Positions 179-31,599 of a DNA stretch of 33,000 nucleotides are shown here, one piece after another. Position 1 is the stretch's first letter; every line of letters begins with the position of its first letter. Both the position numbers and the translations under genes were made by a program. The notes under the pieces are model-generated. The model was given only the letters and a program-made list of their open reading frames with translations. It searched no databases and was not told the origin of the DNA. Source of the DNA: Botryllus schlosseri (taxonomy: Eukaryota); contig CM119383.1 of assembly GCA_051294905.1 (NCBI GenBank), positions 13,144,001-13,177,000 of the forward strand, in the 5' to 3' direction.

Positions 179-297
179 CTCAGTCAATTCAAATCCTGCA
201 GCGCAGCCACACGAATACGAGCCATAGTTATTCCGGCACCGCATCATGCATCCACCATTTTCTGTTTGACATTCGTCAACGTCGTTACAGACGAAAT
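179..297 (-). CDS. Exon: cbEGF ([40 protein letters not shown])
   Basis: Acceptor TTCAG, donor GTAAGC, phase 1->0; canonical calcium-binding EGF spacing; too short for the ORF track. Confidence 0.9.
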
Positions 298-3200
298 CTG
301 AACACAACCAATACACAATTATGCAGCATGTGGTAAGTACATGCTTGGTTTCTTGAAGCTAATATCTCCAATTTGTAACGAATATCAAAATGAAATACAA
401 TCAACGTTTACTGAAATTGGTGACATGGTTTTAGAAAATGCAAACTTGGGCAGTTTCATTCTCAATAATTGAAGCAGGGATGGCCCGTAAAAATATTGTT
501 TTACATGCGCAGGATGCAAAGAAACTCATGTATATATATAATATTTGGTCAGTCTGACACTTGATTACTGATTATGAGCTGTGTGAACAATCCTTTCTGC
601 AGCCTACCTCCGTCGCTTTGATAGATCTTCCGAAATCCAATCTGGCACAGGCATAGATAACTGCCGAAAGTATTGTTGCAATAACTTTTGAACTGCTTAC
701 AAAGCAACGGGTTTGACTCGCATTCATCCACATCTAAACTCAACGCATATTAATTTCAGCGAGAGTGATGTATGCAAGGAGTAAAAATCACCTTCGCATT
801 GAATACCATCTTCGGCTAGCACTTGTCCCACGGGGCATGTGCATTTGGGTGATCCGTTTACAACAATGCAATTGTATGGACATTGTGGCGGATCGGCAAA
901 GTCTCTGCATAAAGGTTGGTCACATTGCATTCCGTCGCCAGCCATGTTGTCAGGGCACGATCCGCATGTGAAAGAATGTCCAGACGAAATACACGACACA
1001 TCTATGGGATATGAAGTACAATTTGTAAAAAAATTTGCAATAGATTTTGTATATTACATATGAAAAAAACAGCTGCATACTCACTACCATTACAATTAAG
1101 GCTTGGCAAAATTTAGTACCTAGCTTATTCCATTCCAAGTCAAGTACCACCTATTATAGAGTCATATCAGATATAATGACTTGGAAAGTTCAAGTATGTA
1201 TCTTTCTCACGGCCACAAAAAAGTAATCCTCATTATATATCACCAAAATAATCTTGTAAATCTTGACCGTGAGTATTTCCTTTCTGCCACGACTTACAGG
1301 AAGTAAACGTTTAAGAAAGATATGGCCTCAACTGCAGCTAATCTATGGAACGTAGGCTATAAACTAATAGAAAAACGACGGCAATGTCCAAATTTTAACT
1401 GGTTGTCATTTACCTGGATAGCACGGATTCATGCTACAGGGATCAAGGAGACCGTCGCACCATTGACCACATTGCCAATCATCGCAAGCACAAGAAGCTA
1501 TCTTCAACCAGCTATAATCCTTTGCTAGTTCCGCGCCTGTCTTGTAAACGGAAGTAGCCTGTACAAGTTTGGTCAAATCGGATGTCACATGCAGGTATTT
1601 GTACCAATGTCGAGCAAACTCACCTCGTCAAATACACATTGGCTGTAATTCATGCAGAAACAGGCAATCACATCCACTGTCCTTGACGTTACTGCAAGAT
1701 ATAAAATTGTGCAAGTTTTTAAAATAATATCATATCAATCAATGTATCAATATTGATATATATCAATCAGGGTTGTAACCAAGTCACAAGGCTCCGAGTC
1801 ACAAGTCAATTTCACTTTTATAATTTTGACTCGAGTCAAGTCGAGTCATTTTCAACTCACCACCGAGTCAAGTCCGAGTCCAAGTCATCGATTAGAGGGT
1901 CGAGTCCGAGTCATGGTATTATGACTCGAGTCGAGTCCAAGTCAATACGTTGACTGCTCAGTTCCCAGCTAAAATCTTGTTAAACTCACTTTTTATAACT
2001 CTGTTTGGTGATTTTGAATGGTTCGTATTTATAATATAGTAATTTTCCACATTTTCAGCAGGTTCTGATCGCAATCTCACGTGCTAGTACCAATAAACGA
2101 AATCCCAATAGGGTGGTTACTTCACTATTCTTCGAAATTACGATAAAATATCGGTCTTATCCGTCTGCGTCTCGAGTCATATGACTTGGTTCGAGTCATG
2201 CGCAATGACTCGAGTCCAAGTCGAGTCAATACACAGATTGACTCGAGTCGAGTCGAGTCATTTCTGTATTTTGAGAAAATGACTCGAGTCAAGTCGAGTC
2301 ATCAGAAAATCGTGACTCGACTCTGACTCGAGTCGAGTCATGACTCGAGTCATTACAACCCTGATATCAATATAATATCAAGAAATATGTGATTGGTACC
2401 TCGGTCAGCATAGCTTCTCGTTACATTTCCAAGACTTCGTGGAACACATCATTCTCATCATCATCATTATTATGCATGATAACATGAAATAGACTGTTTA
2501 GAGTCAAGTGTACCTGTTTGATGCTGGTGTGATCAGACTAGATGACCTTCACGGTCTTATCGATCATTCCTATCTAATACCGAATACTGTGCAAGCATAT
2601 TTTCTGTACCACCATCACTGCCGTGTGTTATGTAATTTGGTTGGATGAAAATGAAGACTCTCTCTCTCTCTCACTCTCTCTCTCTAAGGGATCAGGATTT
2701 ACTCGCAAATGCAGCAATTGAGTATGAGTGCTCATTTTTATTGATGAATTTGAATTAAATATGAAATCAAAGTAATTAATAAAATCTTATGATAATATGT
2801 GTCACGATTTTTAGGCGAAATGGCAATACAGGCTGTTGCTTTTCAGTTTGAACATAGCTGCTAATACACGCCTTGTTGATTCCTGAGCTTCTTCACACAG
2901 ACGATGTAGTCATAGGTATCTAAGGTTTTGATATGCAGTGGGAAATATGTTATTATACTTAAACTCTATGCTTTCACATCCAAACCTATTCTTATTGATC
3001 TCCCAACAATTACATGAATCATATACAGTACATTCATGATTTTCAGTCTTTGTTGATTGACAGCTTAGAGTAGGCGGTTGCTTTTTTGCAACAAAATCTG
3101 TTTTGCCGATGCTCCAGCAAATTCTTACAAACAGTGGGGTTACAGGCATCGGGCATTTTGATACATTACGGGAAATTAGCGTTTTACAAGACATCTATGT

Positions 3201-6200: not shown

Positions 6201-9200
6201 CTTCCATTGGCAAGCATTTAATGGATAATTCTAGTAGTTAAACTAAGTTATACAGGATGTAGATTTCACGTCGTCATGAGGTCATTTATTCTTTCATTTG
6301 TGTGCTTGAGAGTCGATTTTTATCAAGCTACACCAACTTAGTTTGTGACGACATAAGAACTATGAGTATAATCTAAAGATACTACACTGAGCTTATACCA
6401 TTTTCCGCCTCAATTATTCGAATTTTTATGCCCCAATTTGCATTTCACACCATAATTCGTGATGACATGACATGACCTACAATACACAGTATTAACACGC
6501 CCACTTAGCAACCTGTGTATAAAATGTGATTCACTGCTTTCAATTCAGAAATAAAATAGTTTGAAACGTTGACACGGCATATCACAATATTTTTTGATTC
6601 TCATTTGGCCCCCACGCTATAGAACATCAAAACGAGATATTGAAATTACATGTAGTGCTAGTAGTATATTTTCTTCCTACACTTCATGCACCAGTTCAGT
6701 CTCCCTCTTACAACTTATATATCACGATTCCAGATAGATTCCTACCCCACAAATATATGGCTTTATTTTTTGGCGGTCATAATCTATTCTCCTTAATTTT
6801 GAGTCGTCCTCACCCATTAGGCCACTTGTTTTTCCTTTCAATGTAATCGGAACGTGGCCAGTGTGTGAGATCGAATTTTCCACGGCCCGAACGGAAAATT
6901 GCACGCGTTCCGAGAATATCAAGCTCACTGCTTCGCACAGGTAGTGGTCATCTTCGTCAATCTGCAAATCTGAAATTGGTAAAAATATTTCCACTTTTGC
7001 TAGCAATTGTCAAGGACTGCACTCGGGCCTCTGCCAGATGAAATTAGATAAATAACCATTGATTGCAAACTCAAAGAGAACAAGGAGCAGGTAATATTAC
7101 CATTTGCAGGATTTCTTGTAAGGCTACAGGTGAAAATGGACATACAAAACTGGAAAACAAAGGTTTTCAAGCGCACCAGCTAATCGAAAGACATAACTAT
7201 ATGAGTATGATAGGGAAAGCATATATTTCAGGATGGTTCAGACAAGTTCGCAATGCCCGGTAAAATGCCCAAACATAATTTTCCTGTGTATATTCCAAAT
7301 CGAAACAGAATTAGAGATAAACAACACTCAGATATGGTCAAAATAGTCAACGTGGAAGGAGAAAATTAAACGTCAGAAAAGTAAGAAGTCAAAAATGAGA
7401 TTTGGTCTTGGACTCGCATAATTCAAGCAGTTGAGAGGTTGCTACATTTAAAAAGTTCATGATAAATCCCCGCGGCCAATGCAAAATGACCAATGATAAT
7501 GCACATAAATACAATGATTAAAATCATGTTCAGATACCGTAATACAGAGGCTATTTCATGAAGACGATTTCACTAATAAAGTGATGCAAACCTATCACTA
7601 AAATACTTTAAAACACTCGACTAAGTAGTGATAGTAGAAAAACCTACTGAGTATTGGAACTAGTCAAAACACTTTATTACTGATTATACCAGTAACCATT
7701 TCTGACAATACTTCATTGATTAAAATTAAAAATGACTTGCTGAATGCTGAATAGAATGGATAATAGCATCCAATAACTAAGAAACAAGTTGCATTATAAC
7801 CTTCATATTCAATAAATGTGTCCATCCCAACTATAGTGCCCGTGCCCGTCTCAGTGCCCAACAGAGCCTCAGGTGTTGAAGCCGTCACATGTAGTTTCCC
7901 CTCAAAAGTATTCATCTCCAACAGGAAAACCTTATCTATAACTTTGAAGCCCATCGCCGTGATTACGTTGATCATTGCGCCGTTGAATTCGACACAATCG
8001 ACAACGCATTGAACCAATAGGTGATTCGTTTGGAAGAGGATGTATTGTCCTGGCTTATCGATGTTGAAAATCGCTCCGTCTAACGTTAGAAAGGTTGGAT
8101 CGCCGCCGCCGTACGTGAATGCAGCAGGCTTATACAAAGAATAACCTGTGAATAGACATTGGAAACTTTAACATTAAGATGAGGCTCACTATAAAGTACA
8201 TACTGAGCTCGTTAGCAACAAAGAAAATCAGATGGATTCAAGTTTTGTAAGTGGCTTTCCTAGATAAGTGCTGATTTTCAGTTTAAATGATGGAGGTAAT
8301 ACTTCACAAATTCCGGTAATCTGGATGAATTGGCATTTGCGAGTGTAATGAACACAAGTATTTGGCACTGCGTCCGTTTTAAATTGCCATTTATGTTGCT
8401 AATGAAGATTTTACTTGATTTGAAATTAATTTTCCCATGGACTATAAAGTAAATGCAATTCGAGAAGGAAGAAAGTAAATACTAGCGGGAGTCAACTATT
8501 TCAGTAATGTCAGAACCGTATTTTCGTCAACACCAGTTCTGTATTTTATTGACTTGAACAGAACGGTACGGCAGTCTTTTGACGGTACAGACCATACCAG
8601 GGTTGTAATCAAGTCACAAGGCTCCGAGTCACAAGTCAATCTCACTTTTATAGTTTTGACTCAAGTCAAGTCGAGTCATTTTCAATTCACCACCGACTCA
8701 AGTCCGAGTCCAAGTCACTGAGAAGAGGGTTGAGTCCGAGTCATGGTATTATGACTCGAGTCGAGTCCAAGTCATTGTGTTGACTGACCAGTTTTCAGTT
8801 GAAGTCTGCCTAAATCAATTTTTATAACTCTGCTTGGTGATATCTGTTATGTTCGTGCATTTACGTTCAGTGTTGTTCAACTCCTAATTTCTATAGGACA
8901 AGTAATTACCGCCAATCATTATTTGCTCGAGTGTCGTGCTTCGTATTTATACCCTGTGTTCCATTGTCTAATGGTCTTTCGTTTGAATGCACTTTGGATT
9001 GTATCGCCTGTCGTGAGTTGTTCTGCTGATAATATACCAACTTCGTATTGCAACCTCGTCGTATGAGTCATTGTTCAAACAAGATCAAGAACATAACAAT
9101 ATCGAATGGTTCACATTTATAATGTATCAATTTTCCTCATTTTTGGCAGTTTCCGGTCGCACTTTCAAGTACCAGTACCAATAGACGAAATCCCAATAGT

Positions 9201-12200: not shown

Positions 12201-15200
12201 TTCTGAAGTTTTTTCTCTGTCTACTGCCACTTGAAGTTATTTAGGTCTTACAGCGTTACTTCTACCGTGTAAATTAAAGAATTCAAGCACGAAGACAAAA
12301 ATCGCAAAACATTTCATCACTCGAACAGAAGCAACGGTTACCTTCCCTTCGAAGCGCCCGGGTCAGGAATTGCGTATCCGCGCAAAATCGGAAAAGAATG
12401 CGTCACCAGCTCCAGCCCCGATCCTAAATACCCGTACACATACAAAAGGTACGTCACATCAAAATCCGTCGCCAGAATGGCTTGAAATTCGATGCTTTCG
12501 TTAACAGAATTCAAACTCGTGACGTAGCCTTCCCACGTTACTGTCGTAATTTGCAGGAAGTCTTCAGACTGGCTGAGTTTAGAAGCATCCAGCATTTTGT
12601 TGACATATTGCAACGAAGTCTGGTATTGAGTAGATGTCGGTGTGACCGTATCTGCGCATATACTTGTGAACTCATAATCCGAATAATCATCTCTGACAGC
12701 CCACAGTGGGAGAAAAACTGCTTGAAACTCAGAAGGAAACTGTTTTGAAACAGTCGGATGACTGAGAACTTGAATCCATTCTGTGGGCAGTTCTTTTGCG
12801 GCGAGAATGAATATTCCATTGGACGCGGCGTATAGGTTATCGAGGAAAACATGTTCTGCATTGTGACTGAACGGAACGGAATGGTCAATCTTGATATGAA
12901 TAACATCCGTCTGTAGACAATTAGCTGCGACAAGCAATACAGCCTTCTGATTTTCAGGAGCTGTCTCTGTAGTGTTTTCTCCATGCCTGGGATAGAAAGT
13001 GAATCAACAGATTTTTATATCACCGTATATTCATACAAGATACAAAAGTATGATATGACGTTAACCACTGATTAGTAGGAGGCCTATTCAAGAAAACTTT
13101 TCGTGCACATAATTTTAAAAGGTCCTGGGGCTGTAATGTAAACTAATAAGTGTATCGTTCTCAGTTTTGTAAGTATATGGAAATTTCATCGACTTCAATA
13201 TCAAGAGTAGAGAAATATATTCTGTGCGGCAGTATTAGCATGCTGGTCGTATATAGAGATCAATATAATCCAGTTCTTAAACTGGGGCACATGGACCCCT
13301 TGGGGGTTCGCGTACTAGTGTTAAGGGTCCACGAATGGCAAATGTTGACACTACAACTACATAAAACTACATATTCCTCCAACTGGTAAACAGACTGTGG
13401 CGAGGGCTGTAAGTTATGACCTTTTTTTCTCATCAAGTAGCTTTTTAGGCATGAAATAGACATGATTGAGGCTGGGATTATGATTGGGACTAAGTGATGA
13501 TCATTTTTAGGAGCCTAACGGGTTCACGCCAGATAAAAGATTAAGAAAAATTGATGTAATGAAATGTTTGATGAAATGCATCCCCATACAATGATAAGTT
13601 TTTCATTGTCTTGACATTGAATGAACAAGAAATGTTATAATTAAAGTAAGTATCTGTCACAGTAAATTAGTATCGAGTCACTTGGAAAATGATATTTTGA
13701 TTTTACTGATATAAAATACATAACAATCAATTCAAAGTCACCTCGCTTATTCAAATGTGGAATTATAATAACGCTGTTGCGGTACAAATATCGACTTGTG
13801 ATTCAGATCAAGTAATTCAGGTAGAGCGAGTGCAATGTTCCTCACTAGGAACACCCAACTCACCGTTTTGAATCGCTCTCCGTGGTACCGTCGAAGCAAT
13901 ACAAAAATCTTCCTACACCGTCAAACATTTCGACATGGGGTGGTTTGCATGAACAACTACAAAACATGAATGGTTACATAACAATACCGTAAAAAAGGAA
14001 ATACCAGTAACATACCTGATATCCTCTGATCCACGTAATTTACACACTCCGTTGCCACTTAACTGATCGCATCTGTCCAACGAGTCACCGCAAGGATTGA
14101 TCGCTCCAGATGGACATTCTGTCGGTATGCATTGAATTTCTTCACTGTCCAAACCTGCTTGAAACAGATACTTTGAATTTTTTAAAACTATATGGGGTTC
14201 GAGAAAATATTTACAGATATAGGGTTGCAAATTGTCACAAAAAATATCAAAACTTCTACAAGAAGTTCACTCAATTATTTAAAATTATGCTGTTTTGAAT
14301 CTTTTTGTGCAACTGCTTGGAAATTCAGGATAATTATATGGGAAGTGATAAACTGTGTCACTATCTTGTTGAGAAAATTATGTAGACACAAAACCAGTAG
14401 TATTACTTATTCAAATCATCAATAAAAGTAAGATACAAAAAATTTATTAATAGCAGAGCAGGCTTATGTAAAACATAAATGGGTACCTTACCAATGCAAT
14501 TGTTTCCATCACAAGTCCTGTACCGAGTTTGAATGCCCTTTCCACAAGATGTCGAGCATTCACTAAAATCACTCCATGCACTCCACGTATTCGCAATTTC
14601 ATCACAAGAGCCTTCCGCTGATTCATTGCAGAAACGTCTAAAATAAAACAATTTTTGATATACGGCGAAGATAATTAATGCGGTTGGAGGTAGGGTTTCA
14701 GTGGGTTGCTATCACAAAATATGTTCGATACAGTAATAAAATCGATTTGATTTTACAACCACGCAGTCCTTTATATTATTGCTTCTCGTTTTTTTAATGC
14801 TACTTTACTTATTCGTGTGATTTAGAGCCAGAACCTCATCCATCTCAACAATAAATTTTATATCAACCAATCACTGTCCAAGTAACATGCCACCCCATTT
14901 TTTGTCGCTTGCTTTTTTCCATACTATCCTCTTTTACTTTTCATTCACGGTGCATGCCTCTTCTTTAATATCGCCGAGGCCAAGGTGGGTGTCTGATTCC
15001 AAAGACTACTCCAAGTGGTTCCGACACCTTCTTCCTCTATTCATTGTATAGCAATTTTGTGGTGTATTGAACTGATAAAATTGCTAATAAACCGTACCGA
15101 TTTGTTGTTGTTGTTGAAAGTCCACAACCTATAAAAAAATCTAAAAGATATAATCAAAAGCAGAAATTGGCTCCATACCGCAGTCCCGGCAATAAATCTT

Positions 15201-18200
15201 CGCATATTCCATTAGGGCAAGCGGATTCCGTGCAGTTGAGCGGATCAATACAATAATTTCCAATCATCTCAAAGCCAGCATCACAGACACAAGAGAAAGA
15301 TCCTAACAATAACAAGGACTCGCTAGTATAAATTAATTGAATGCAGAGCAATATCTCACCTTCCGTATTGTGACATGTCGAAAAGGAAGGGCATACGTTA
15401 ACATCCAAACATTCATCAACGTCTATGCAATCGCCCCAATGGTACTTCAGACCTCGAGGGCAATCCACAATGCATATTTCTGAGATAAAGTAAATGGAAA
15501 TATATCAAGACAATATATTAAGTCCATGAAGATGTATCACACATCCTCATAGATTTCTTATGTGTATTTGAGATATGGGCACTGAAAGGCATCGGTCATG
15601 TCACATTGTCAATTATCATAATCAACTGCATTCTTCATTTCACTGTTATAGTTTGAATAATCTCCCATTCTTTGGGATGTTTGTTGTGTCATGTTGTGTT
15701 TTTCAAACAATAGACTGCAATTTATTTTATCATACAGCACTAATGAACCAATTCTAAGTCAGTGCGATCCATCATTCATTACCATAAAGATATGAACAAA
15801 TATACTACTTTACCTCCGTCTGTAGTTTGACAATTTGACAAACGTGAACAATTCCCGTATTGATCTAGCAACAGATCATCTGGACATGCGCACGAAAACC
15901 CACGATACTTGTCCACGCAAAAGGCTGGAGGTGTACAATTATGAACTCTCATTACGCATTCGTTCATAAGTTTTGATCCGCAATCCATAAAATATTCTTC
16001 TTGCCACAAATTACTACCCGCAACAATCTACAGACAATGAAGAAATACTAGTTCCGAAAACTTTTTCTGACTGAAAACTAAATTCGTAAATTCATAAGCA
16101 AAAGACAAGCTCACCTAATGACTTGCTCTGAAAAGAAGCATTGAACTGATGAATTTAAAATGGCTACAATGAGGACAACACACAACATATTCTATTTTAT
16201 TTAAATTAAAGCATTGTTTCTTTGTTTCCATGCACTGCTGTCACTGGCACAAAAAGAAAAACTTTTGCTTACATGCTTTGCGACCACCGTACAAATGACA
16301 TAGCACTATATTACAGGTGGAAAGTATTATTGAAAATCAATAAATCACAGTAATCCGGTATATAAATACAATGCCATGATGATTCATAACAGAAATCAGT
16401 CTCCAATCAGATACGTTTATACAAAGTGTAATATCGCCACCGTTTTATTTTCATTATGGAAAAACATACTGATGTTGACATACTGTAACCACAATACAGT
16501 ATAGGTAATTCTATTCCACTAAACTGTACCATAACACATCAATAAGTTACCTGCTCCATTGACGATTCATCCCATACGGACACCAATAGAAAAACGTTAC
16601 CCCAGCACCATTTGAATATCGTGCTGTCCAAGTCTATATTTCCCAAAAACACAGCGACATCATCAAACGTTGCTTGACCATTTGCTATCTCTTTTTCAGC
16701 AATGGAAGATTCGGTTTTTATTCGAATACAGCTTTCGGTGTGCATCATGGTTTGGAAAGTGGAATAATTTGCAAAGGAATATTTTTCAAAGTCTCTTGCA
16801 CACATGTAGAAGCTAGCAATCGGTTTTATGCTTTGAACTTGCAGATCAGTGGTGAATCCTTGTATAAATAATGATGCTGAGGTCATTCGAGTAGGCAGTG
16901 ATATTGTCTTATCCATAAACTCCAGTTGAAAACTTTTTAGTTGCGTTCTGTGATAAAAAAATCATTAAAAAGACTTTCTTGATGTGTGTTCTGTACTTCA
17001 CATTCTTACCCATTCAATAATAATGGCATATTACCTTTGATTGGAGACGTGTTCCTAACAGTGCTTATAAAGAGGAATTCTTCGGAACACTTTTGGTTCC
17101 TTTGGAGTGCTATGAGGTGTCACCAAGTCTCAAACATGATTTTATATACTATCATACATAGCCTCGTTATTATATGAGTAGGCTATTTAAAAAAATATAT
17201 GTCAATTACTATCTGAATCATGAATATATCTATGTAGTAAGTAATGTTTGGATATCTGCCATGAATAGGTAGTGTATCCGTCTCCCTAGATGATTGACAA
17301 TAATTATTATTATTTTGATTGCCATGGCAAAGTTATACGATGAAAATGTATAAATCGTTGACAATTCACAGTCGTCAAATACAAATATGGCGAAATGATT
17401 TCGAACGATATTATTTTCGTGTGTTAATACTCACTTGGTTTCAGTCGGGCAGTTCATCAAGGTTAATTCCTCTAAGACATGAGCATTATTTAGTAGAGAC
17501 ATCTCGACAAAACTGCTACCTCTCGTGATGAATGCCATTACCTGAAAGATGCAAATAGCAATGGTGACACAGTTGCATAATTTGGTAACAATATGTCAAG
17601 ATTTACTATCGAGCGTAACTATTTACATATCTGCTCACCGGCGTCCTCACATACCACTTATAAAAATATCCAAATTTGAAATGGACTTCAATCACAATCA
17701 TTTTCTGATATTTTCATGCAATTGTTTGCGTTTATCACAATATTAGTGCCAATTATGTCAATAATGTGATGTCCGCACAAAGTATTCACAAATATTTCAT
17801 GTGTGAACACTAAAATTTATGACCATCCGTATTGAGACCTCATACGTTGATGAATATTATGAGCTGTTACATACTCGATACTCACATGCATCAAGATAAT
17901 TATTGAAAAGGGGAGGTGTTGTAGCAATTTGATAACTCGGTCAATATTCAACCTTAGACAAACATCAAAACATGTAATTTCTGAGACCACTGATACAAAT
18001 CAGAAAAGCGTGGATTGTATCAGACATGTTGTTGTGCATACCTTCAAAGAACCGATGTTCGTCTGAGAACAGATTTCCATGACAGTATTGTTGTCGATTT
18101 GCAAAGGGAGCACTAGTTCGAATCCTTTTGTTATCGCATTGTGAGTAGTGTGCTCATGAGTATACGTCAAGTCAGGAAGTTCCCGCTCCATCAAAGGGAT

Positions 18201-21200
18201 CACTTTCACTTCACCAGAGAGGCTATATGTAAACTCTAGCTTCACTGTAATGACGACACTATCGAGAAAGTTTTGGAAAGTGTCAAGAACTGAAAAATTC
18301 CATAGCTGCACCGCATACAATCGATCAACTGAAACTGGCTGGTGATATATCTGCATTTTCATTTGTACAGATGTATTTTTGTTTAGCTCCAGCGCATCAT
18401 GTGATAAAGAATTTTGATCAAGCCAGTTAATACCGGTTACCACCGGTGGAAACAGCTCGAGATCCGCAACTCCAAAGCAGTCAATTTTAAAGGTGACATA
18501 CTTCACGTTGTTGTACAAGACTTGATCAACGGTATAATATAGGTCATTAAACTTCACGTTTGGTTTGATAGTGATCTGCTGTACAATCTCTAATAAGTCT
18601 GTAGTGTCGTTGTCTCTTGTGTGCAAAGCACAAATGTCACTGGAAACATTCATGTTGAATATAACGGTAAAATTCACTTGTTCTAACACATTCCAATACA
18701 TTCTTTGTTGTGATGTCACTGTCCAGTCATACTGTAAAAGATTTCCTGTTGTTTCGATGGAAAAGAAGGATTCAGACTCTTCCCGTTGCAGCTGAAATTG
18801 CCCGAAGTTCCATACCGAAACCTGCATTCTCACTTTCGAACTCTTCAACGGATCAAGTATAATGTCTTCGTGGAAATATTCGTGAACATCGATACTGGTC
18901 TGTAGGCTGTGAAAAGACGACTCTGTCCAAACAAGCACGTCACCTGGGCATTGAACCTTGACAATCTTTTCGAGATAATTATCGCTTTTGTCATTATCAA
19001 TGATAAAGTTTCCATTGTCTTCAACCGATAAGGATATGTGTGACTGTCCGCAAAGCGTTCCAATCAGTCGAATGGGAATTGTGAAAGTAGACTGAATTGT
19101 GATGGAAGGTACGTGGTAACGTTGTATCTTGAACAGTTCGTCGTCAGAGACTACTGCGCCGATGGATTCGTTGAAAATTATGAACGAGCCAGCTTGAAGA
19201 GTGTTGGATTTATCACCGATGCGAATCACTAATTGCAGTTTGACGAAGTTTGCGGTATCGGTGGTGTCGTCCAAAGTTCTGTAAGATGATGTAAACAAGA
19301 CAGAATTGGTCAAAGTTGACAATATTGCTGCTCAAGTAGAAGTAGGAGTAATGCCATAGATTTCTACGCAATTACGCATGAAAGTTCCAAATTCATAGAC
19401 ATATCATAACTAGGGCTGGACACAATGATTCGAGTACTCGAATCTTAATCGAGTATTAATTTTAATGATTCGAGTCGAGTAGTAGGAGATATTTTTGAGT
19501 ATTGGAATTATACGCCCCTAGCCACTAACACAGTGGTTCCCAACGTGGGCAATATTGAGAAACGAAGATGCGAAAAGGGGGCGACTGGGGGCGAAAATGT
19601 TAGATCGTTCTATGAGCTGTATTTAATTAACACGCCTAAAAATGCATGTGAAGACGGCTTATTTTGCATATGACTCGAAAAAGAGGTCAACTCAACGGAA
19701 GGTAGATGCGGTGACTGGTTCTCCGAGCACCTACCACCTTGGAAAAACGGCCTTTTTTATTAAATTCACCAGCGATAAGAGTTGGGTGAATAAATTTCCC
19801 GATTATACGTCCTCTTTTTCCGATCCATAAATATGGGGGGCGAAAACTTGTGTCGAGACTGATAAGGGGTCGATCAGTCGGAAAAGATTGGGAGTCAATG
19901 CACTAAGAGTTAATGTGTCAACGAGAATGATAGTTTTTATGCTATCTCCTCTCTAGAAGCCTTGAATCCTCTGTTGACCGTATCGCAGCACACGAAACAT
20001 GTAGTACAAAGCTAAGCACGTTAGTCAAAATTACATTTCCGTGAAGTCGTGATGAACGCACTGCATTGTCACTAAGTCCAATGTAATTGGCAAGGTAGAT
20101 AATATACCAACATATCTTGAATGTGATTTAAAACTGGCCTCGTGTTCTTTGTGGTCGCATAAAAGGTACATAGGCTATATGTGCTATCCACATCATTCAT
20201 GCTGTTATGACATTACAATGAGTGATACTCGAATACTCGACTCGAAGCTTAATACTCAATTCAGAGTCAACCAATCACTCGGGTACTCGATTTTGCCCAG
20301 CCCTAGTCACAACTATTTCAATTAAAAGCAGAAAACGGTATTCTGAAAAGAAAGCGGGATTATTTTAACACCCGGTATGATATGTTACGACAGTGGTTCT
20401 CAATCTTTTTGTCCCCGCGGACCTTCACAAGTTCTAGTTCAAATATAACTCAATTATCATGCAACAGCCATCTTCTTTTGAAAATATTAACTGTATGCTG
20501 CTGATAAACAGCAACAAAATGACTTTTTTTGTTTAAAGGGGCACTGCACTCTAAAAATGATGTGGTCTCAAATTGAAGGGCAAAACGAAAAAATGTTTGG
20601 CCGCGGCTGTTTTCTTCATAATGCCACCGTAATGGAGCTGCAATTTATTGAAATTTCCACAAGAACTTCACGCTCCAGCAGTCAAGCAGAGATTGAATAT
20701 GTCGTACACGACAGAAATAGAATACACTAGGCACGATTTTGACATAAGTATCATGGCTGAACATCTTCCGTTGAACGCGGTATCTAAACAACCTTGGTGC
20801 GTACGACATCTTTCCTTCATAACATCGGCTGAGAACTACATAAAGTTCGATCTCTACATGACTGCTGGACCGTGAAGTTCTTGTGGAAATTTCAATAAAT
20901 TGCAGCTCCATTACAGTGGCGTTCTGAAGAAAACAGCTGCGGCCAAAAACTTTTTTTCGTTCTGCCCTTCAATTTGAGACCACATCATTTTTAGAGTGCA
21001 GTGCCCCTTTAAAATAGCATCATATTATATGTAGAAATTGGGTAGACTTATATTATTTCAAATCGAATTCAGTAGTTGGATTTCTTGAAATGCATGGTCA
21101 TGTCTTGAGACAGAGAGAGAGAGATATGGTATTCTTTTTCGCCATCACCATCGAGATGCTTTGACGACGGAGATGCGATACGGCCTTTATAGTAAGGTCA

Positions 21201-24200
21201 TCTAGTCTGCACCCCCGTTTTTTCTCCTCCGTGCTATCCGTGATTGCTGAGCGCCTAGCAGGATAGCCGCGGATACCAGTTTTCGAGTCTTTGGTCTGAC
21301 CCGACCGGGGGTCGAACCCACAACCTACCGATCGAGAAGCCGGACGCACAACTATTACACTATCTCGCTCGGTGAAAATCCATTTGATATGAACGAGAGC
21401 CTAAAATCCAGTTCCACAAACATAGAAGATGATGAATGTAGCATTAACGTGTAACGCTTCCAACGACACATTTGGGTATGATCGCAACATAGATGACAAC
21501 AAAAGTGAGAAACACATTTTTATTACTCAAAATATGACTCCCAAGCCTAGTCATTTCTATCTACCAGCTCATCTTCAAGTTCAGAGGAGAAAATGGATTC
21601 TACGCCGAGGTTTCAATTCCTTAATTTGGACAGATTAGGAAATAAAACGTCAGGAATTTTAAATTCAAACGGCTGTTCACTAATTAGCTGAGTCTGAAAA
21701 CTTCAAATCCAAAATGTTTTGCAAACATTTCGCAGTCATAGCCTGATTGAGCTTATTACTCCTACTTTAGTTTTTCCACAAACCCCAGTGAAACAACATC
21801 TCTAAAAACAGCAATATGTTTTATCAGTAGTCTATTGACAATTTGCTAATTGCACAGTAGGATATAACGCCCATTTTGATGATGGGAGTCCTGAAGTTTT
21901 AGAAGCTAGCAAATTCCTTGTGATTTTCCTGATTTAAATATATTACAGATTAGGTTTTCATTAATCTTGCAAATTTAGAGGATTCGCGGGCCCCTAGCGG
22001 TTCGCGAACCACCGGTTGAGAAACATGATTTTAGTATCTTGAAAAAATGTTGTATGTGTAATAATTATGGTTTCGTTACTAGTTTCACCATCAGAACACA
22101 GGTTTGGTCGGCTGTGTGAAGCACACTGACTCATGAACCGAAGGTGCGGGCGAAAGCACTAGAAATCATAAACGGAAATAATCAAATACTATATTGGTAT
22201 GTATCTGAATCTCAAACAGTTTTAGCAGTCAGATAGAACTTCAAAGGAAGCCTCTTACCTCTGAAGTTTCGACGAAATGGAAGCTACAAATGAGCTGCTT
22301 CCCGTTATCCGGACAACGCCATTGTCCGACAAAGAGAAATCGTCCAAAACCAAATAGGAATCATCAGCCGCACCATCGAATTCTCTCAAGTTTGCGACCG
22401 ACCCCAGGGGCAAAGAAAACCAATTGTTACCCCACTGCTTGTCGGCATCAATCAAGGGACCTGGAAATTGATACGTAAACCTATTTACTTAGTACATCGA
22501 ACCCTAATAAAAATATGAAGTCAATGAAATATTAATTAAGTAAAAGGCGGCATGAAAATATCTATTTTGTCTCACAAATATCTACCATGCAAAGAAACGT
22601 GAATGTTAGGAAATAAATTTATTGTAAATATTGGCAGTATGGGTACTTACATGTGATCTGAATAATTAGGTATTTCTGACGGCCGTCTGCGCAAGATGTG
22701 AAAGAAAGACTGAGGTTGCCTTTGGCTCGAATATGAAGCGATGAGCTAGAAATTACACAAATGACTGTGTCAAAATTTGAGGAACTAAAATAGTGCAAAC
22801 ACAAAAAGCAATCCTTATTCTGCATATTCTGCATTGAGATACATATTATGAAGATTATTATCTAAAACCTTACACCTGTTTTTCTAATACATGTCATCAA
22901 CGTCTAGTAACAATGAATGCAATAAAAAATGAGATACATTTCAAATTTGGATTATCATGGATGGTAATCGTGCATTCTAGAAAAATATTCCCGTCGATAC
23001 AGATATTTACTCGAGTGGTAGCGTTTTGAACTACTTTCACTTCTACTTGAGAGGATTTTATCAAAATTACTTACTTTTCACGATTTGGATTTTGTAATGA
23101 AGAAAGGGGTGTATTCCCGTCAAGTTTATGAGTGGAATTGTCATAACGTCTGGGGGAAATAGCCAGGGGCTGTATCATGGTAACTGGACACATTTTCAAA
23201 AATTGCACCAATTTGTAGTGGAATTAGTCATGGAAATGCACCTGAAATTTGAAAAGCAGCCACTTATGATCGGCTACTAAAAGTAGGCAACGTCTCGATC
23301 AAATCAAATTTTTGAAACTATCCGAGTACTTTACTAATCTTGATTTTCTACTTCCACTTCAAACAGTTTTGAAAGGTCTTGGAAATTGCTACTTTTAAAT
23401 GTGATTGAGTATGATTAAACATGATTATTTCTTTTCCTCGGGTACCAGCGATGACTACATCAATCACTTCTGGATTGATATTTGGTTGAAAGCTTAGCAT
23501 TTCCTGCTATATTCAATTCATGTGAACCTCTCTTTGATTTACATCATATTTGGATATATCAACGTCATGTCATAGGAAATTCTGATACGAACCTGTTACC
23601 AACATAAAAATTTGAGCTTTGTACGCGAAGTCGCACTACTTCGTCAAAAGTTCTGTCTAATAGCGGATCATAGGAGACGTAAGCTTTCCAAACAAAATCG
23701 CCATCATGCATTGCTTGTTTCAGAATTGTGGAATTGGCAAATGAAAGCGACGCCGTCACCAAGATAGGAGTATCCACAAAGCATGATAACTTTATCCATG
23801 GCAACACCGATATGACAGACACGTCCTTAACATGATACACATCATCTAAAAGAAAATTATCATAAAACTTGTATTACGCACCAAGTCATTATGACAATGA
23901 CCAGATTTTCTAACCTATGCATCGGATGAACAACTTCTTTGTAATGGAATCATTAGGCGTATAGGGATCAACACAGTGCAGAGCATTCTTGTTGATAGTA
24001 GCCACGATTTCGGTGTGACCACAAAACATAGCATTCCAGCCGTGATCTGATGCGAAAATTATTTCCGTGGACACAGGAATACCCAATGATGGATCATCAG
24101 CTTCAATCAAGTCCGATACTGGGTTTGTAATTAGCGGAATGCTGATCTCACCCCTGAAAAAATATGTTCCAATGAGATCTAACAGGAACAGTAAAGCCTG

Positions 24201-24913
24201 TATCCTGATATTGATCTACAAATGCAGTTCTCTGTTACCAATAAAAACTATTTATTTGATAAAGTGCTTGGTTTGTTTGCTTCTGTCAGCATAAACATTA
24301 TGAATTCGAACTGTCAGATCAAATATATATGTATGCCTCCATAATATGAGGATCTCCAAAACTCGACATTAACCCAAATGCTGAACTTGTGACAAAATCA
24401 GTTCGAAATTAGAGTCCACACAGTTATATTCATTATTGCTCCAAAAATTTTTGTTTGGAAAATTAATATTGAATATATTCCTACATATAATTTAAGACCA
24501 AAATCTTGTAGAAATGTAAGAGATAGTAAAGTGTGGAAAAAAATTCAAACCTTATTCAAGTTAGAACGGGCTCACATAAAATTCTGAAGTGATTAGCAAT
24601 CTTACTTCTTCAACTTGTAAATAATAACTTGAGGATCCAACAGTTCACTCAGAACAAGAGTCTGATTCGGCCTGAGATACCGTAACTGGAAGTAGTCTAT
24701 AATGCTGTGCTGTTGTCCTTCTGCGATCATATCAGGTGCAGATGTCTCCTCGATAAACGCATCGCAAAGATCTTCATCAATACCCGGACAATGTAGATTG
24801 GATGCCATTTTTCCATTAAAATATGCAGCTTCAATACCGTGACCTTCCCAAATCAAGGTCAATATCATTATGACACATGAGACAAGAAACAGATCCCTAC
24901 AGTGTCTCGGCAT
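179..24913 (-). CDS. Multi-exon gene (33 exons, 3'-incomplete): large secreted/cell-surface mucin-like protein with CARDB-like repeats, EGF/cbEGF, TSP1, NIDO, AMOP, VWD and C-terminal EGF repeats
   Basis: Exons below have GT(GC)-AG boundaries with matching phases and sum to 6876 nt (2292 codons) without stops. Recognised motifs: DVDEC cbEGF, WSAWS..CS.SCG.G.QTR.R.C (TSP1), [10 protein letters not shown] (NIDO), C..W..EP/CCY/CC..Y..KRP (AMOP), GDPTF.TLDG and GLMGNFD (VWD). Confidence 0.85.
608..733 (-). CDS. Exon: cbEGF ([12 protein letters not shown]...CLCQIGF)
   Basis: Within ORF 549..743; acceptor TTTAG, donor GTAGGC, phase 1->1. Confidence 0.9.
792..1001 (-). CDS. Exon: end of one EGF plus one full EGF-like domain (FTCGSCP..M.GDG..C; [16 protein letters not shown])
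   Basis: Within ORF 724..999; acceptor CCATAG, donor GTGATT, phase 1->1. Confidence 0.9.
1414..1558 (-). CDS. Exon: EGF-like ([14 protein letters not shown]...[10 protein letters not shown])
   Basis: Within ORF 1406..1588; acceptor GTACAG, donor GTAAAT, phase 0->1; 65-nt intron upstream. Confidence 0.85.
1624..1691 (-). CDS. Exon: [23 protein letters not shown], start of post-stalk EGF-like domain
   Basis: Acceptor TTGCAG, donor GTGAGT, phase 1->0; C-x-C-x-N-x-x-x-C pattern typical after the VWD stalk. Confidence 0.8.
1768..2363. mobile_element. Non-autonomous hAT-type MITE, family A copy 1 (596 bp) with subterminal GACTCGAGTC arrays
   Basis: TIR CAGGGTTGTAA...TTACAACCCTG; perfect 8-bp TSD ATATCAAT (1760-1767, 2364-2371); homologous to 8598-9341; no transposase ORF. 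Confidence 0.9.
2530..2685 (+). mobile_element. Retroelement (SINE/LINE) 3' fragment ending in a (TC)n tail
   Basis: Aligns by eye to 11001-11119 in the opposite orientation; shares CAGACTAGATGACCTT (2534-2549) with the SINE at 21194-21209; (TC)n at 2658-2685. Confidence 0.55.
2872..2919 (-). CDS. Candidate small exon ([16 protein letters not shown]) with a GC donor
   Basis: Acceptor CCTTAG; the only open frame is phase 1 and fits both neighbours if AG|GCGTGT is the donor. Confidence 0.4.
3267..3519 (-). CDS. Exon: post-VWD stalk (…[11 protein letters not shown]…[10 protein letters not shown])
   Basis: Within ORF 3241..3669; acceptor TTTCTATTCAG, donor CAG|GTTGGT, phase 0->1. Confidence 0.65.
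3760..4330. repeat. Unclassified interspersed-type repeat with internal ~208-bp and ~146-bp subrepeats and a terminal hairpin
   Basis: TACTGGCTACT(T/C)GATAAAATTGTTAGGT at 3774 and 3982; AAATTTGGTTCAATTCC at 4033 and 4179 (degenerate at ~3824); perfect 29-bp inverted repeat 4233-4261/4293-4321. Confidence 0.6.
4399..4644 (-). CDS. Exon: Cys-containing region following VWD (…[27 protein letters not shown]…)
   Basis: Within ORF 4393..4680; acceptor TTTACCAG, donor GTATAG, phase 0->0. Confidence 0.75.
5608..5834 (-). CDS. Exon: VWD C-terminal part ([11 protein letters not shown]…WEFVKSW)
   Basis: Extends ORF 5521..5802; acceptor TTTCGTCAG, donor GTAAGC, phase 1->0; completes GLMG|NFD. Confidence 0.85.
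6814..6969 (-). CDS. Exon: VWD middle part (…[14 protein letters not shown])
   Basis: Within ORF 6722..7006; acceptor ATTTCAG, donor GTGAGG, phase 1->1. Confidence 0.85.
7801..8145 (-). CDS. Exon: AMOP end / VWD N-terminal part ([20 protein letters not shown]…GQYIL)
   Basis: Within ORF 7664..8137; acceptor ATTCACAG, donor AG|GTTATA, phase 1->1; GDPH-like VWD start. Confidence 0.85.
8598..9341. mobile_element. Non-autonomous hAT-type MITE, family A copy 2 (744 bp)
   Basis: TIR CAGGGTTGTAA...TTCCAACCCTG; perfect 8-bp TSD GACCATAC (8590-8597, 9342-9349); collinear with 1768-2363 but with an extra internal segment at about 8842-9104. Confidence 0.9.
9620..9750 (-). CDS. Exon: AMOP C-terminal part (HSDKSS…LPQMHCC…[11 protein letters not shown])
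   Basis: Within ORF 9549..9791; acceptor CTTTTAG, donor GTAAGT, phase 2->1. Confidence 0.85.
10638..10777 (-). CDS. Exon: AMOP core ([18 protein letters not shown]…)
   Basis: Within ORF 10634..10822; acceptor TTTCTTCAG, donor GTAACG, phase 0->2. Confidence 0.8.
10833..10913 (-). CDS. Exon: AMOP linker ([27 protein letters not shown])
   Basis: Acceptor TATTTCAG, donor AAG|GTAGCT, phase 0->0, 27 codons; 55-nt intron downstream. Confidence 0.65.
11001..11119 (-). mobile_element. Second copy of the retroelement 3' fragment seen at 2530-2685
   Basis: Reverse complement GATCATTCCTATCTGATACCGAATATTG…TAATTCGGTAGGATGAAAA matches the 2560-2652 region. Confidence 0.6.
11613..11725 (-). CDS. Exon: AMOP start ([13 protein letters not shown]…[10 protein letters not shown])
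   Basis: Acceptor GTTTTCAG, donor GTTGGT, phase 1->0; C-x-x-W..EP..CP.T is the AMOP N-terminal signature. Confidence 0.85.
11941..12050 (-). CDS. Exon: NIDO C-terminal part ([11 protein letters not shown]…[14 protein letters not shown])
   Basis: Acceptor TTTTTAG, donor AAG|GTATGT, phase 2->1. Confidence 0.8.
12342..12910 (-). CDS. Exon: NIDO domain (SNGIF…FLPLWA…TVTW…[18 protein letters not shown]); alternative 5' boundary 12986
   Basis: ORF 12338..12937; donor AG|GTAACC; acceptor TGTCTACAG (12910, phase 0) or CTATCCCAG (12986, phase 2). Confidence 0.85.
13271..13553. mobile_element. Degenerate hAT (Buster/Charlie-like) MITE
   Basis: Left CAGTTCTTAAACTGGGGCACATGGACCCC; right GGGTTCACGCC…ATTAAGAAAAATTG; flanks ATATAATC/ATGTAATG match 6/8. 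Confidence 0.45.
13864..13912 (-). CDS. 49-nt exon between the EGF-like segment and NIDO; reading frame ambiguous
   Basis: Acceptor GTGTAG, donor GTGAGT; open in two frames, each giving a consistent path. Confidence 0.65.
14016..14154 (-). CDS. Exon: TSP1 end ([14 protein letters not shown]) plus partial EGF-like segment
   Basis: Within ORF 13913..14230; tandem AAG/CAG acceptor, donor AG|GTATGT (alternative 14005). Confidence 0.8.
14492..14637 (-). CDS. Exon: thrombospondin type-1 repeat ([25 protein letters not shown])
   Basis: Within ORF 14403..14651; acceptor TTTTAG, donor GTAAGG, phase 2->1. Confidence 0.92.
15179..15302 (-). CDS. Exon: cbEGF end plus next EGF-like ([10 protein letters not shown]…[11 protein letters not shown])
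   Basis: Within ORF 15154..15468; acceptor TTGTTAG, donor GTATGG, phase 1->2. Confidence 0.88.
15360..15479 (-). CDS. Exon: EGF end / cbEGF start (DCPRG…[13 protein letters not shown]…CHNTEG)
   Basis: Acceptor ATCTCAG, donor GTGAGA, phase 1->1. Confidence 0.88.
15814..16027 (-). CDS. Exon: end of last CARDB-like repeat plus cbEGF (MNEC…[13 protein letters not shown])
   Basis: Extends ORF 15779..16009; acceptor GTCTGTAG, donor GTAAAG, phase 0->1. Confidence 0.88.
16551..16947 (-). CDS. Exon: CARDB-like beta-sandwich repeat (…[19 protein letters not shown])
   Basis: Extends ORF 16539..16916; acceptor TTTATCACAG, donor CAG|GTAACT, phase 2->0. Confidence 0.8.
17010..17054 (-). CDS. Small exon ([15 protein letters not shown])
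   Basis: Donor GTAAGA; acceptor TGTTAG chosen to fit phase 2->2; 5' boundary uncertain. Confidence 0.5.
17435..17541 (-). CDS. Exon ([17 protein letters not shown]…NCPTET)
   Basis: Acceptor CTTTCAG, donor GTGAGT, single open frame, phase 0->2. Confidence 0.75.
18042..19278 (-). CDS. Large exon (1237 nt): several beta-sandwich/CARDB-like repeats
   Basis: ORF 18000..19322; acceptor TCTTACAG, donor AAG|GTATGC, phase 2->0; contains [41 protein letters not shown]. Confidence 0.85.
19411..20305. mobile_element. Non-autonomous hAT-type element, family B, with TCGAG/CTCGA subterminal motifs; host of a nested MITE
   Basis: TIR TAGGGCTGG(A/G)CA…TGCCCAGCCCTA; flanks ATCATAAC/GTCACAAC (6/8, both transitions); 18-bp palindrome GATTCGAGTACTCGAATC at 19427-19444. 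Confidence 0.75.
19531..19900. mobile_element. hAT (Buster/Charlie-like) MITE, family C copy 1, nested in the 19411-20305 element
   Basis: Ends CAGTGGTTCCCAA…TTGGGAGTCAATG; TSD CACTAACA/CACTAAGA; homologous along its length to 27575-27960. Confidence 0.85.
20537..21008. mobile_element. Kolobok-like non-autonomous foldback element (472 bp, ~150-bp TIRs)
   Basis: TTAA on both sides (20533-20536, 21009-21012); termini AGGGGCACTGCAC…GTGCAGTGCCCCT; near-perfect inverted arms 20537-20684 / 20859-21008. Confidence 0.85.
21107..21373 (-). mobile_element. tRNA-derived SINE with (TC)n tail
   Basis: Minus strand: A-box-like TAGTGTAATAGT (~21351-21362), B-box GGTTCGACCCC (21308-21318), body GGGTCAGACCAAAGACTCGAAAACTGGTATCC…GGCGCTCAGCA, (TC)n tail at 21107-21124. 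Confidence 0.8.
22259..22460 (-). CDS. Exon ([20 protein letters not shown]…ISSKLQR)
   Basis: ORF 22255..22455; acceptor TTTCCAG, donor AG|GTAAGA, phase 1->2. Confidence 0.8.
22651..22784 (-). CDS. Exon ([24 protein letters not shown]…IIQIT); alternative 5' boundary 22764
   Basis: Within ORF 22619..22834; donor GTAAGT; acceptor ATTTTAG. Confidence 0.7.
23075..23149 (-). CDS. 75-nt exon, open in two frames
   Basis: Strong acceptor TTTCCCCCAG and donor GTAAGT; length is a multiple of 3. Confidence 0.6.
23593..23845 (-). CDS. Exon: CARDB-like repeat N-half ([11 protein letters not shown]…[20 protein letters not shown])
   Basis: ORF 23565..23840; acceptor TTCTTTTAG; donor AG|GTTCGT (alternative 23604). 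Confidence 0.75.
23915..24153 (-). CDS. Exon: CARDB-like repeat C-half ([13 protein letters not shown]…[13 protein letters not shown])
   Basis: Extends ORF 23910..24110; acceptor TTTTTTCAG, donor GTTAGA, phase 2->1. Confidence 0.8.
24606..24913 (-). CDS. Putative first coding exon with signal-peptide-like N-terminus ([26 protein letters not shown])
   Basis: ORF 24602..24913; donor GTAAGA in phase 2 matches the next exon; splice acceptor TTTGTAG 36 nt upstream of the ATG (exon boundary 24949). Confidence 0.75.
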
Positions 24914-25019
24914 AGTACATGTCAGTGCAGATGGCAGCCGATCTCGTACCTACAAACTCAATAAAATCAAAAAAGATGCATCACATTCAGGTTGCTTTCA
25001 TAAAATGTAAGCCTGCCTA

Positions 25020-31326: not shown

Positions 31327-31599
31327 CTGTAACAGGATTTATTTAAATGTATCATCTGCATACTCAAATATACAGGCACAAATGAATGATTACAACTGAG
31401 TATGGTTGGACATCAACAATATAACTTAACAGGCCTGCTTCACAATATGCACAAGATCAATTATGTTGATTGATAGGATTGGTATGTCCGATTCGATTTT
31501 TGATATTTTTCTAACTTCAAAACAATGCGGTTTGAAATTTCACTGACAAGAGCAATTGAGCACACATATACTAACCAATCCCACGAAGATGCATTAGAG

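Follow-up and report, generated by a model that had tools for sequence, protein, structure and literature searches.

A 33-kb window of the Botryllus schlosseri genome probably holds the central exons of a giant ascidian gene with a MUC4-type core and a long N-terminal region outside Pfam

The stretch analysed here, called the window throughout, is 33 kb of Botryllus schlosseri DNA (assembly GCA_051294905.1, contig CM119383.1, positions 13,144,001 to 13,177,000 of the forward strand), for which a first-pass annotation made from the letters alone had proposed a giant mucin-like protein. Its G+C content is 33-42%, and its minus strand carries numerous stop-free stretches of 60-440 codons and no long bacterial-style open reading frames (ORFs), as would be expected of an animal gene rich in introns. 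No RNA genes came up in Rfam and tRNA scans of the window, and Tandem Repeats Finder found no tandem repeats in its DNA. Using cross-species matches as anchors and seeking, for each junction, GT...AG pairs that keep the frame, we obtained a stop-free gene model of 36 minus-strand exons and 3,132 codons that runs from 31326 to 179 (Table 1). Its introns span 55-2,980 nt, all are of the GT-AG type and their phases are consistent, whilst the 3' limit at 179 is a genuine GTAAGT donor. The phase-consistent exon chain of 2292 codons proposed earlier is confirmed, except for its start, and forms part of a longer one. We posit that the window holds the central 36 exons (~3,130 codons) of one very large ascidian gene, truncated at both window ends, a reading to which we give a probability of roughly 0.72.

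Relatives were sought with the 443-codon ORF at 19331-18003, which served as query for an exhaustive HMMER search across 1.84 billion representative proteins. Two of its three hits are true relatives: the best is Styela clava LOC120339992 (XP_039264177; here P0004), an 'uncharacterized protein' of 2,489/2,544 amino acids (aa), and next comes a 421-aa ORF carried by a 7.5-kb contig from run SRR10746997 (Logan contig SRR10746997_5798; L002). The third, a bacterial repeat protein, was discarded as spurious. A search with the Styela NIDO-VWD part revealed Ciona intestinalis LOC100182773 (3,192 aa, uncharacterized; P0007) and one frog protein (P0008), whilst a wider search with the Styela N-terminal part returned that protein alone, and a two-sequence profile brought up no relative amongst proteins of 470-1,490 aa. 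The L002 contig, which probably comes from another ascidian, carries a third, compact copy of the gene with very short introns, its 7.5 kb accommodating the N-terminal exons together with the TSP1 and both EGFs, and is of use in placing exon borders. A giant that joins a MUC4 core to an N-terminal region outside Pfam has so far been found in ascidians only and is uncharacterised, no paper mentioning LOC120339992 or LOC100182773 having been found in the literature.

The window was then compared with these sequences as one of four species, the others being Styela (locus OZ123520.1; L001), L002 and Ciona (locus AP043574.1; L003). Residues 1302-3132 of the model align to aa 6-1881 of the Styela protein (XP_039264177.2) in a single BLASTP segment with 36.8% identity over 1,897 columns (E = 0); exon by exon, window 19178 to 179 runs colinear with this same stretch of the Styela protein at 25-60% identity. 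The Ciona protein is likewise colinear, with 26% identity over 1,631 columns. These two alignments rule out chance as the source of the 36-exon model. The Styela and Ciona proteins are thus colinear with the window product throughout the overlap (37% and 26% identity) and share its domain order, the GDPT/S variant described below, the N-terminal region outside Pfam and conserved upstream exons. The three genes are members of one family and probably orthologues.

With regard to domains, EGF_CA and TSP_1 are detected directly by Pfam on window exons (Table 1), and the remaining members of the core were located through the orthologues, the Styela protein being scanned in pieces. NIDO passes its cut-off of 25 in the colinear segments of both species (Styela 25.8 bits, Ciona 45.2 bits); AMOP passes in Styela (28.7 bits, cut-off 25) and stays below in Ciona, at just 17.2; and VWD passes in both (Styela 38.5 bits, Ciona 39.1 bits, cut-off 22.9). 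In Styela the three domains fall where window 12986-11941, 11725-9620 and 8145-5608 align, respectively. Across AMOP and VWD the window exons are 46-53% identical to the Styela and Ciona segments that pass, and the window AMOP stretch holds eight cysteines within 129 aa, the count expected for that domain. As the orthologous segments pass Pfam at colinear positions, this analysis argues that the predicted order EGF-TSP1-NIDO-AMOP-VWD-EGF is right. It is the order that the first-pass annotation had read from motifs, and its description of a giant protein with a MUC4-type NIDO-AMOP-VWD-EGF core preceded by TSP1 and EGFs also stands. Between the VWD domain and the EGF array lies a further region of ~230 aa with several conserved cysteines (Styela aa 1430-1730), for which no Pfam family was found in the window, Styela or Ciona; no sushi (CCP) domain was matched in the window exons or the orthologues.

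The first-pass annotation had suggested that a membrane anchor be looked for to the left of the window, and the orthologues provide one. Beyond the window edge the Styela protein continues for a further ~660 aa with more EGF_CA, TSP1 and a transmembrane helix, and past the same edge both the Styela and Ciona proteins display some ten additional EGF_CA modules, along with a second TSP1, a hydrophobic helix and a tail that is short and basic. This C-terminal helix and short tail, present in both orthologues, indicate that the family comprises type I membrane proteins. Neither public model, however, has a signal peptide, which for type I membrane proteins implies that both annotated N-termini are incomplete.

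Table 1. Predicted exons and related features of the window (minus strand). A slash marks an exon-intron border; L001, L002, L003 and P0004 are as named in the text.
Feature	Position	Strand	Description
Exon 1	30505..31326	-	N-terminal region, no Pfam domain; entered in phase 1, gene extends further upstream; acceptor CCTGTTACAG/ at 31327; homologues L001 3749-4429 (E 6e-16), L003 5096-5362
Exon 2	30098..30345	-	N-terminal region; GT-AG junctions; matches Styela ORF 4834-5205 (E 4e-5)
Exon 3	29918..30042	-	N-terminal region; donor GTAAGT; tblastx to L001 5171-5311, L002 223-306
Exon 4	29339..29575	-	N-terminal region; matches L002 429-665 (E 7e-7)
Exon 5	28301..28687	-	N-terminal region; L001 5778-6077 (37% identity, E 8e-14), L002 944-1258
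Exon 6	27189..27328	-	N-terminal region; tblastx L001 6154-6336 (47.5% identity), L002 1344-1502
Exon 7	25724..26503	-	N-terminal region; L001 6365-7024 (31% identity, E 5e-30); ends at phase-1 donor ATACAG/GTATGA
ATG and signal-peptide-like stretch	24844..24913	-	Start in the first-pass annotation; probably intronic, or alternative first exon
Exon 8	24606..24843	-	First exon in the first-pass annotation; predicted phase-1 acceptor at 24843
Exon 9	23915..24153	-	Copy 1 of duplicated ~110-aa unit, motif FCG...D-x4-[DN]-N...C (iterated HMM, jackhmmer, alignment A2)
Exon 10	23593..23845	-	N-terminal region; L001 8194-8421, L002 3329-3532; 69-nt intron
Exon 11	22651..22784	-	N-terminal region; donor GTAAGT; tblastx L001 8798-8905; alternative acceptor 22745
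Exon 12	22259..22460	-	N-terminal region; L001 9156-9344 (E 9e-9)
Exon 13	18042..19278	-	Large 412-codon exon; P0004 aa 6-377 (E 6e-34)
Unit copy 2	19274-18912	-	Second copy of duplicated ~110-aa unit, inside exon 13
Exon 14	17435..17541	-	Small; P0004 aa 381-413 (E 2e-5)
Exon 15	16551..16947	-	Last exon of N-terminal region; P0004 aa 417-545 (E 1e-10); acceptor TTTTTTTATCACAG/
Exon 16	15814..16027	-	EGF-like; weak Pfam EGF-type match (15782-16027); 44% identity to P0004 aa 555-624
Exons 17, 18	15479-15360, 15302-15179	-	Calcium-binding EGF; 57-nt intron between; phase-1 junctions; weak EGF-type match (15157-15504), EGF_CA 20 bits on unspliced ORF
Exon 19	14492..14637	-	Thrombospondin type 1 repeat; Pfam TSP_1 (14406-14708) 39.3 bits, cut-off 21.6
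Exons 20, 21	14154-14016, 13956-13864	-	Cysteine-rich linker; P0004 aa 754-830; GT-AG junctions
Exons 22, 23	12986-12342, 12050-11941	-	Putative NIDO domain; 40% identity to Styela
Exons 24-26	11725-11613, 10777-10638, 9750-9620	-	AMOP domain, 8 cysteines; 41-53% identity to Styela
Exons 27-29	8145-7801, 6969-6814, 5834-5608	-	VWD domain; 46-51% identity to orthologues
GDPT	8093..8104	-	At position of MUC4 GDPH autocleavage motif
Exons 30-33	4644-4399, 3519-3267, 1691-1624, 1540-1414	-	Conserved post-VWD region; P0004 aa 1476-1728
Exon 34	792..1001	-	EGF-like modules; weak Pfam EGF-type match (727-1053); 54% identity to P0004 aa 1730-1799
Exon 35	608..733	-	Calcium-binding EGF; Pfam EGF_CA (552-749) 39 bits, cut-off 27; phase-1 borders
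Exon 36	179..297	-	Calcium-binding EGF; Pfam EGF_CA (152-358) 35 bits, cut-off 27; last in window, gene runs on leftward

Several points weigh against taking the window for the middle of one such gene. Every splice junction of the model is predicted and a few are weak, namely acceptor 24843 and the one placed at either 22784 or 22745; borders are also uncertain at 10777, 10792 or 10804 and at 4644 or 4683, and the small exon 14 was detected solely via the Styela protein. The NIDO match (PF06119) on the window exon at 12341-13003 reaches 18.5 bits, below its own cut-off of 25, and AMOP (PF03782) and VWD (PF00094), each spread over three exons, gave no Pfam match on single window exons and were judged through the orthologues. 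The positions of the signal peptide and of the transmembrane helix fall outside the window. In the N-terminal region only one pair of internal repeats could be detected. Finally, a well-formed methionine and signal-like stretch stands at 24913, and in the NCBI annotation the Ciona locus comprises two genes.

These last two points lead to an alternative in which two adjacent genes share the window: an upstream gene of modules outside Pfam, ending at the stop at 25691, and a MUC4-core gene that starts at ATG 24913 with its own signal peptide and that might even lie downstream in an operon, receiving a trans-spliced leader at AG 24950. The local sequence suits such a start, as the methionine at 24913 opens a charged n-region (M-P-R-H-C-R-D) that leads into 15 hydrophobic residues, and 37 nt upstream there is a pyrimidine tract with an AG at 24951/24950. 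Operons and spliced-leader (SL) trans-splicing exist in ascidians, the homologous Ciona site is annotated as two abutting genes on the same strand, and the LOC100182773 model starts near the equivalent exon. We nonetheless consider two genes improbable, because colinear conserved coding blocks in L001, L002 and L003 match window 31045-19331, including 31045-25851 upstream of the ATG, and because the junction 25724/24843 is a phase-1 GT-AG intron at a homologous position in all four species. The donor of this intron lies a few codons past a conserved cysteine in the last part of the upstream exon, and its acceptor ~17-20 codons ahead of the conserved C...C motif of the next, in each of the four: donor ATACAG/GTATGA and acceptor GGGAAG/GT in the window, ACTCAC/GTAAGT and TTTATAG/GG in Styela, TACAAG/GTTTGT and TTTTCAG/TG in L002, TTTTAA/GTAAGT and ATTGCAG/GT in Ciona.

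In Ciona, donor and acceptor are just ~78 nt apart, within the 166-bp gap that separates the two same-strand annotated genes, of which the upstream one encodes 2,330 aa with no Pfam match on record and the downstream one is LOC100182773 (3,192 aa). The frame there continues upstream past the annotated LOC100182773 methionine to the AG acceptor, and an intron of this size bridging both genes means that this methionine is a residue inside an exon. The exons equivalent to 24843-24606 in Styela and L002 have no methionine ahead of the conserved cysteines, and no counterpart of the window 24913-24844 stretch was found in Styela, L002 or Ciona. Two genes would also fit poorly with the missing signal peptides of the Styela and Ciona models noted above, and would leave the upstream product, over 2,300 aa of modules resembling an ectodomain, without an anchor. 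A single gene spanning the 25724/24843 junction is therefore what the conserved intron argues for, and we regard it as very probable. ATG 24913, at which the first-pass annotation had begun its chain, was rejected as the gene start on the strength of this intron and of the colinear exons that reach up to 31326; it could serve as an alternative or lineage-specific start.

By the same comparison, the Ciona gene appears to have been split into two by annotation, and the full-length protein there probably measures at least 5,500 aa. The public Styela model, judged by alignment, begins inside the large exon and so is truncated N-terminally. Upstream of that model, ~10 kb of conserved coding blocks in Styela stand without a gene call, among them, further upstream still, an additional 883-codon ORF at 628-3276 of L001, for which no counterpart was found in the last 1.6 kb of the window.

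The N-terminal region, for which the first-pass annotation had allowed some 950 aa, measures 1,848 aa in the window and extends beyond it; in its entirety it probably exceeds 3,000 aa. It contains 2.3% cysteine, is rich in isoleucine, leucine, valine, serine and aspartate, and displays 24 N-glycosylation sequons. In the window's 3,132 aa no stretch of 100 aa has more than 29 serines, threonines and prolines combined, and no proline-threonine-serine (PTS) mucin tract was found there, so the earlier remark that a long non-PTS tract occupies the place of the mucin domain was correct. None of 13 N-terminal window ORFs (16.5-31.3 kb) matched a Pfam family at E <= 0.1, nor did Ciona aa 1-1160 at E <= 0.01.

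The first-pass annotation had described this part as CARDB-like repeats. BLASTP among the exons revealed no internal repeats, and iterated hidden Markov models (HMMs) and jackhmmer across the four species identified one paralogous pair per species (24153-23915 and 19274-18912 in the window) and nothing else significant; a regular array is thus not borne out. The duplicated unit is ~110 aa long, with the consensus FCG...D-x4-[DN]-N...C-[PGK]-G-[DK] and a conserved pair of cysteines that probably forms a disulphide. Pairs of cysteines spaced 32-36 residues apart occur 11 times in the region, as against 4.4 +/- 2.1 in shuffled sequences (P about 0.005), and several of them draw sub-threshold, in-register matches to the unit profile. 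Taken together, this excess and these weak matches hint at further, strongly diverged copies of the unit.

Structural modelling gave a usable result for the unit. AlphaFold2 (AF2) run on the 443-aa exon with three sequences was unusable (pLDDT 33); run on the unit with an eight-sequence alignment, it yielded seven strands at pLDDT 73 and pTM 0.68. When this model was compared against the PDB with Foldseek, nothing was found at E < 0.1. Among AlphaFold database (AFDB) clusters it matched CARDB-domain proteins (TM 0.41-0.51) and a beta-helix repeat protein (0.53), at E 0.04-0.15, and in AFDB Swiss-Prot the luminal beta-sandwich of CLPTM1L (TM 0.38). In the ESM Atlas, searched by shape, CARDB clusters took ranks 1, 3, 4, 7 and 8, with a best TM of 0.56. 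In a search by language-model features, CARDB clusters came first whether the query was the large exon or just the unit, with scores of 0.80-0.87, too low for the tool to rate them above leads, whilst a second N-terminal exon scored just 0.6-0.7. Sequence profiles A1 and A2 matched no CARDB chain among PDB sequences, against which the NIDO-VWD region also gave nothing useful.

On the evidence of the model, we read the unit as a beta-sandwich of the general immunoglobulin (Ig)/E-set kind, with CARDB as its nearest known shape. The modelled unit is a seven-stranded sandwich whose closest shapes, in three libraries, are CARDB domains (PF07705; e.g. PDB 3IDU), and its last strand is preceded by an acidic/Asn loop, D-x4-[DN]-N; it differs from them in having a cysteine pair, in lacking any Pfam or PDB sequence match and in belonging to an intron-bearing animal gene, CARDB domains being mostly bacterial and archaeal. 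Of the CARDB-like repeats proposed earlier, what survives is therefore a weak likeness in fold and language-model features, confined to one ~110-aa unit that is duplicated once, and it does not amount to family membership. Such modules may reasonably be supposed to follow one another along the whole N-terminal region, which probably contains much beta structure.

Alternatively, the N-terminal region may be a mixture of unrelated or partly disordered lineage-specific sequence, in which the duplicated unit is a local event and its likeness to CARDB a matter of chance. Such a mixture would account for the single paralogous pair left by BLAST, iterated HMMs and jackhmmer, for the empty Pfam scans, for the low scores of the second Atlas query and for the poor AF2 model of the 443-aa exon. 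Colinear conservation, which extends across 1,800 aa at 23-47% identity in the four species, argues instead for folded domains, and the surplus of 32-36-residue cysteine pairs with their in-register HMM matches points the same way, as does the first place that CARDB took in searches of two independent kinds. We consequently hold a mixture to be unlikely and retain a chain of folded modules as our reading of the region.

A bolder proposal can be built on these modules. The CARDB fold is otherwise typical of cell-surface proteins of bacteria and archaea, and tunicate cellulose synthase, which is of prokaryotic origin, offers a parallel for the possible acquisition of a CARDB-like module. More than 3,000 aa of diverged CARDB-like modules, derived from a prokaryote or retained from a pre-mucin chordate state of MUC4, might then replace the O-glycosylated mucin domain in an ascidian-specific giant of at least 5,500 aa, which could tie the epidermis to the tunic. 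We regard this as a long shot.

Comparison with known systems places the window protein amongst several families with the same core. MUC4 is a surface barrier and a signalling partner. The ascidian protein resembles it in having NIDO-AMOP-VWD followed by EGFs, one transmembrane helix, a short tail and a huge ectodomain before NIDO; it differs in the absence of a mucin domain, whether PTS or tandem-repeat, from the 3,132 aa seen, in carrying TSP1 and EGF modules ahead of NIDO, in having GDPT/S instead of GDPH, and, in Styela, in at least 10 EGF_CA modules versus 3 in MUC4 together with a second TSP1 near the membrane. Drosophila Mesh and mammalian SUSD2 are also single-pass membrane proteins with AMOP-VWD, and Mesh, which has been described in cell-cell adhesion at smooth septate junctions, additionally has NIDO and an Ig-like E-set beta-sandwich in its ectodomain; unlike either, the window protein is far larger, has no sushi domain and contains EGF_CA and TSP1 modules. 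The coral mucin4-like proteins of the skeletal organic matrix (Acropora) share the placement of TSP1 N-terminal to NIDO-AMOP-VWD-EGF, a combination described as peculiar to corals and absent from other metazoans (PMC4890752). This parallel, which the first-pass annotation had named, is confirmed by that paper, and the likeness drawn here is one of architecture; the coral proteins have no long N-terminal region and were recovered from calcified matrix.

How the product may work can be outlined from its predicted order, namely, from N to C terminus, the region outside Pfam, two EGFs, one TSP1, the cysteine-rich linker, NIDO-AMOP-VWD, the conserved region of ~230 aa and the EGF_CA array. We infer that it would be carried to the epithelial cell surface as a type I membrane glycoprotein, on which the EGF_CA rod and the MUC4-type core would sit near the membrane and hold the very long N-terminal ectodomain outward. 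Made of folded modules instead of an O-glycosylated PTS tract, this ectodomain may form an adhesive, barrier-forming or protective, or matrix-anchoring surface coat. A role in coating or adhesion is suggested because the same core occurs in MUC4 (barrier), Mesh (adhesion) and the coral mucin4-like proteins (matrix). The surface location, the role as stalk or coat and, beyond the modelled unit, the fold of the N-terminal region are inferred, and the 'rigid stalk' and 'tunic scaffold' of the first-pass annotation are conjecture.

The same gene could instead yield a product that is mainly shed or secreted as a scaffold in the tunic, in mucus or in basal matrix. If the Asp-Pro bond of GDPT/S were cut, the N-terminal part would be freed, as in the alpha/beta pair of MUC4, and TSP1, EGF and NIDO would build it into the matrix. 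MUC4 is described as self-cleaving at GDPH within the VWD domain into two subunits (PMC8660890). At this position the sequence reads YGGGDPT in the window and Styela, YGGGDPS in Ciona and FGDPH in the frog protein, so that all three ascidian proteins retain GDP, with its acid-labile Asp-Pro bond, and have the histidine replaced. The retained bond and the recovery of the coral proteins with TSP1 and NIDO-AMOP-VWD-EGF from skeletal matrix both favour shedding; the loss of the histidine from every ascidian member makes self-cleavage of this VWD domain uncertain, and the transmembrane helix kept by the orthologues speaks for a product held in the membrane. A mainly shed scaffold accordingly seems doubtful to us, and a membrane-held coat is the working we would propose.

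The introns of the gene contain several further elements. A dispersed repeat of ~400-650 bp, probably an interspersed mobile element, occurs in two introns at 1768-2158 and 8598-9246, in direct orientation and with 82-88% identity, and a related shorter piece is seen in translation at 2112-2323. A second dispersed repeat lies at 19577-19836 and 27638-27893, in introns 12 and 5, with two ~85-nt blocks in ~260 bp at 82% identity. Intron 12 also holds a near-perfect palindrome at 20532-21013, with arms of 110 nt (91% complementarity) and 67 nt (97%), which looks like a foldback element or a miniature inverted-repeat transposable element (MITE). Three diverged direct copies of an 81-nt unit, with 64-75% identity, are found at 3762-4196, in the intron that separates exon 30 from exon 31.

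For the family, this analysis extends to ascidians the architecture of TSP1 with NIDO-AMOP-VWD-EGF that had been reported as peculiar to corals (PMC4890752). The complete product probably ranks with the largest proteins of ascidians, and the public models of Styela and Ciona look wrong. Its N-terminal region represents a large body of conserved sequence without a family, the largest exon of which has two true relatives among the 1.84 billion representative proteins searched. Tunicates are the closest living relatives of vertebrates, and a tunicate MUC4-type protein with what may be a long array of folded modules in place of a mucin tract would bear on how membrane mucins arose.

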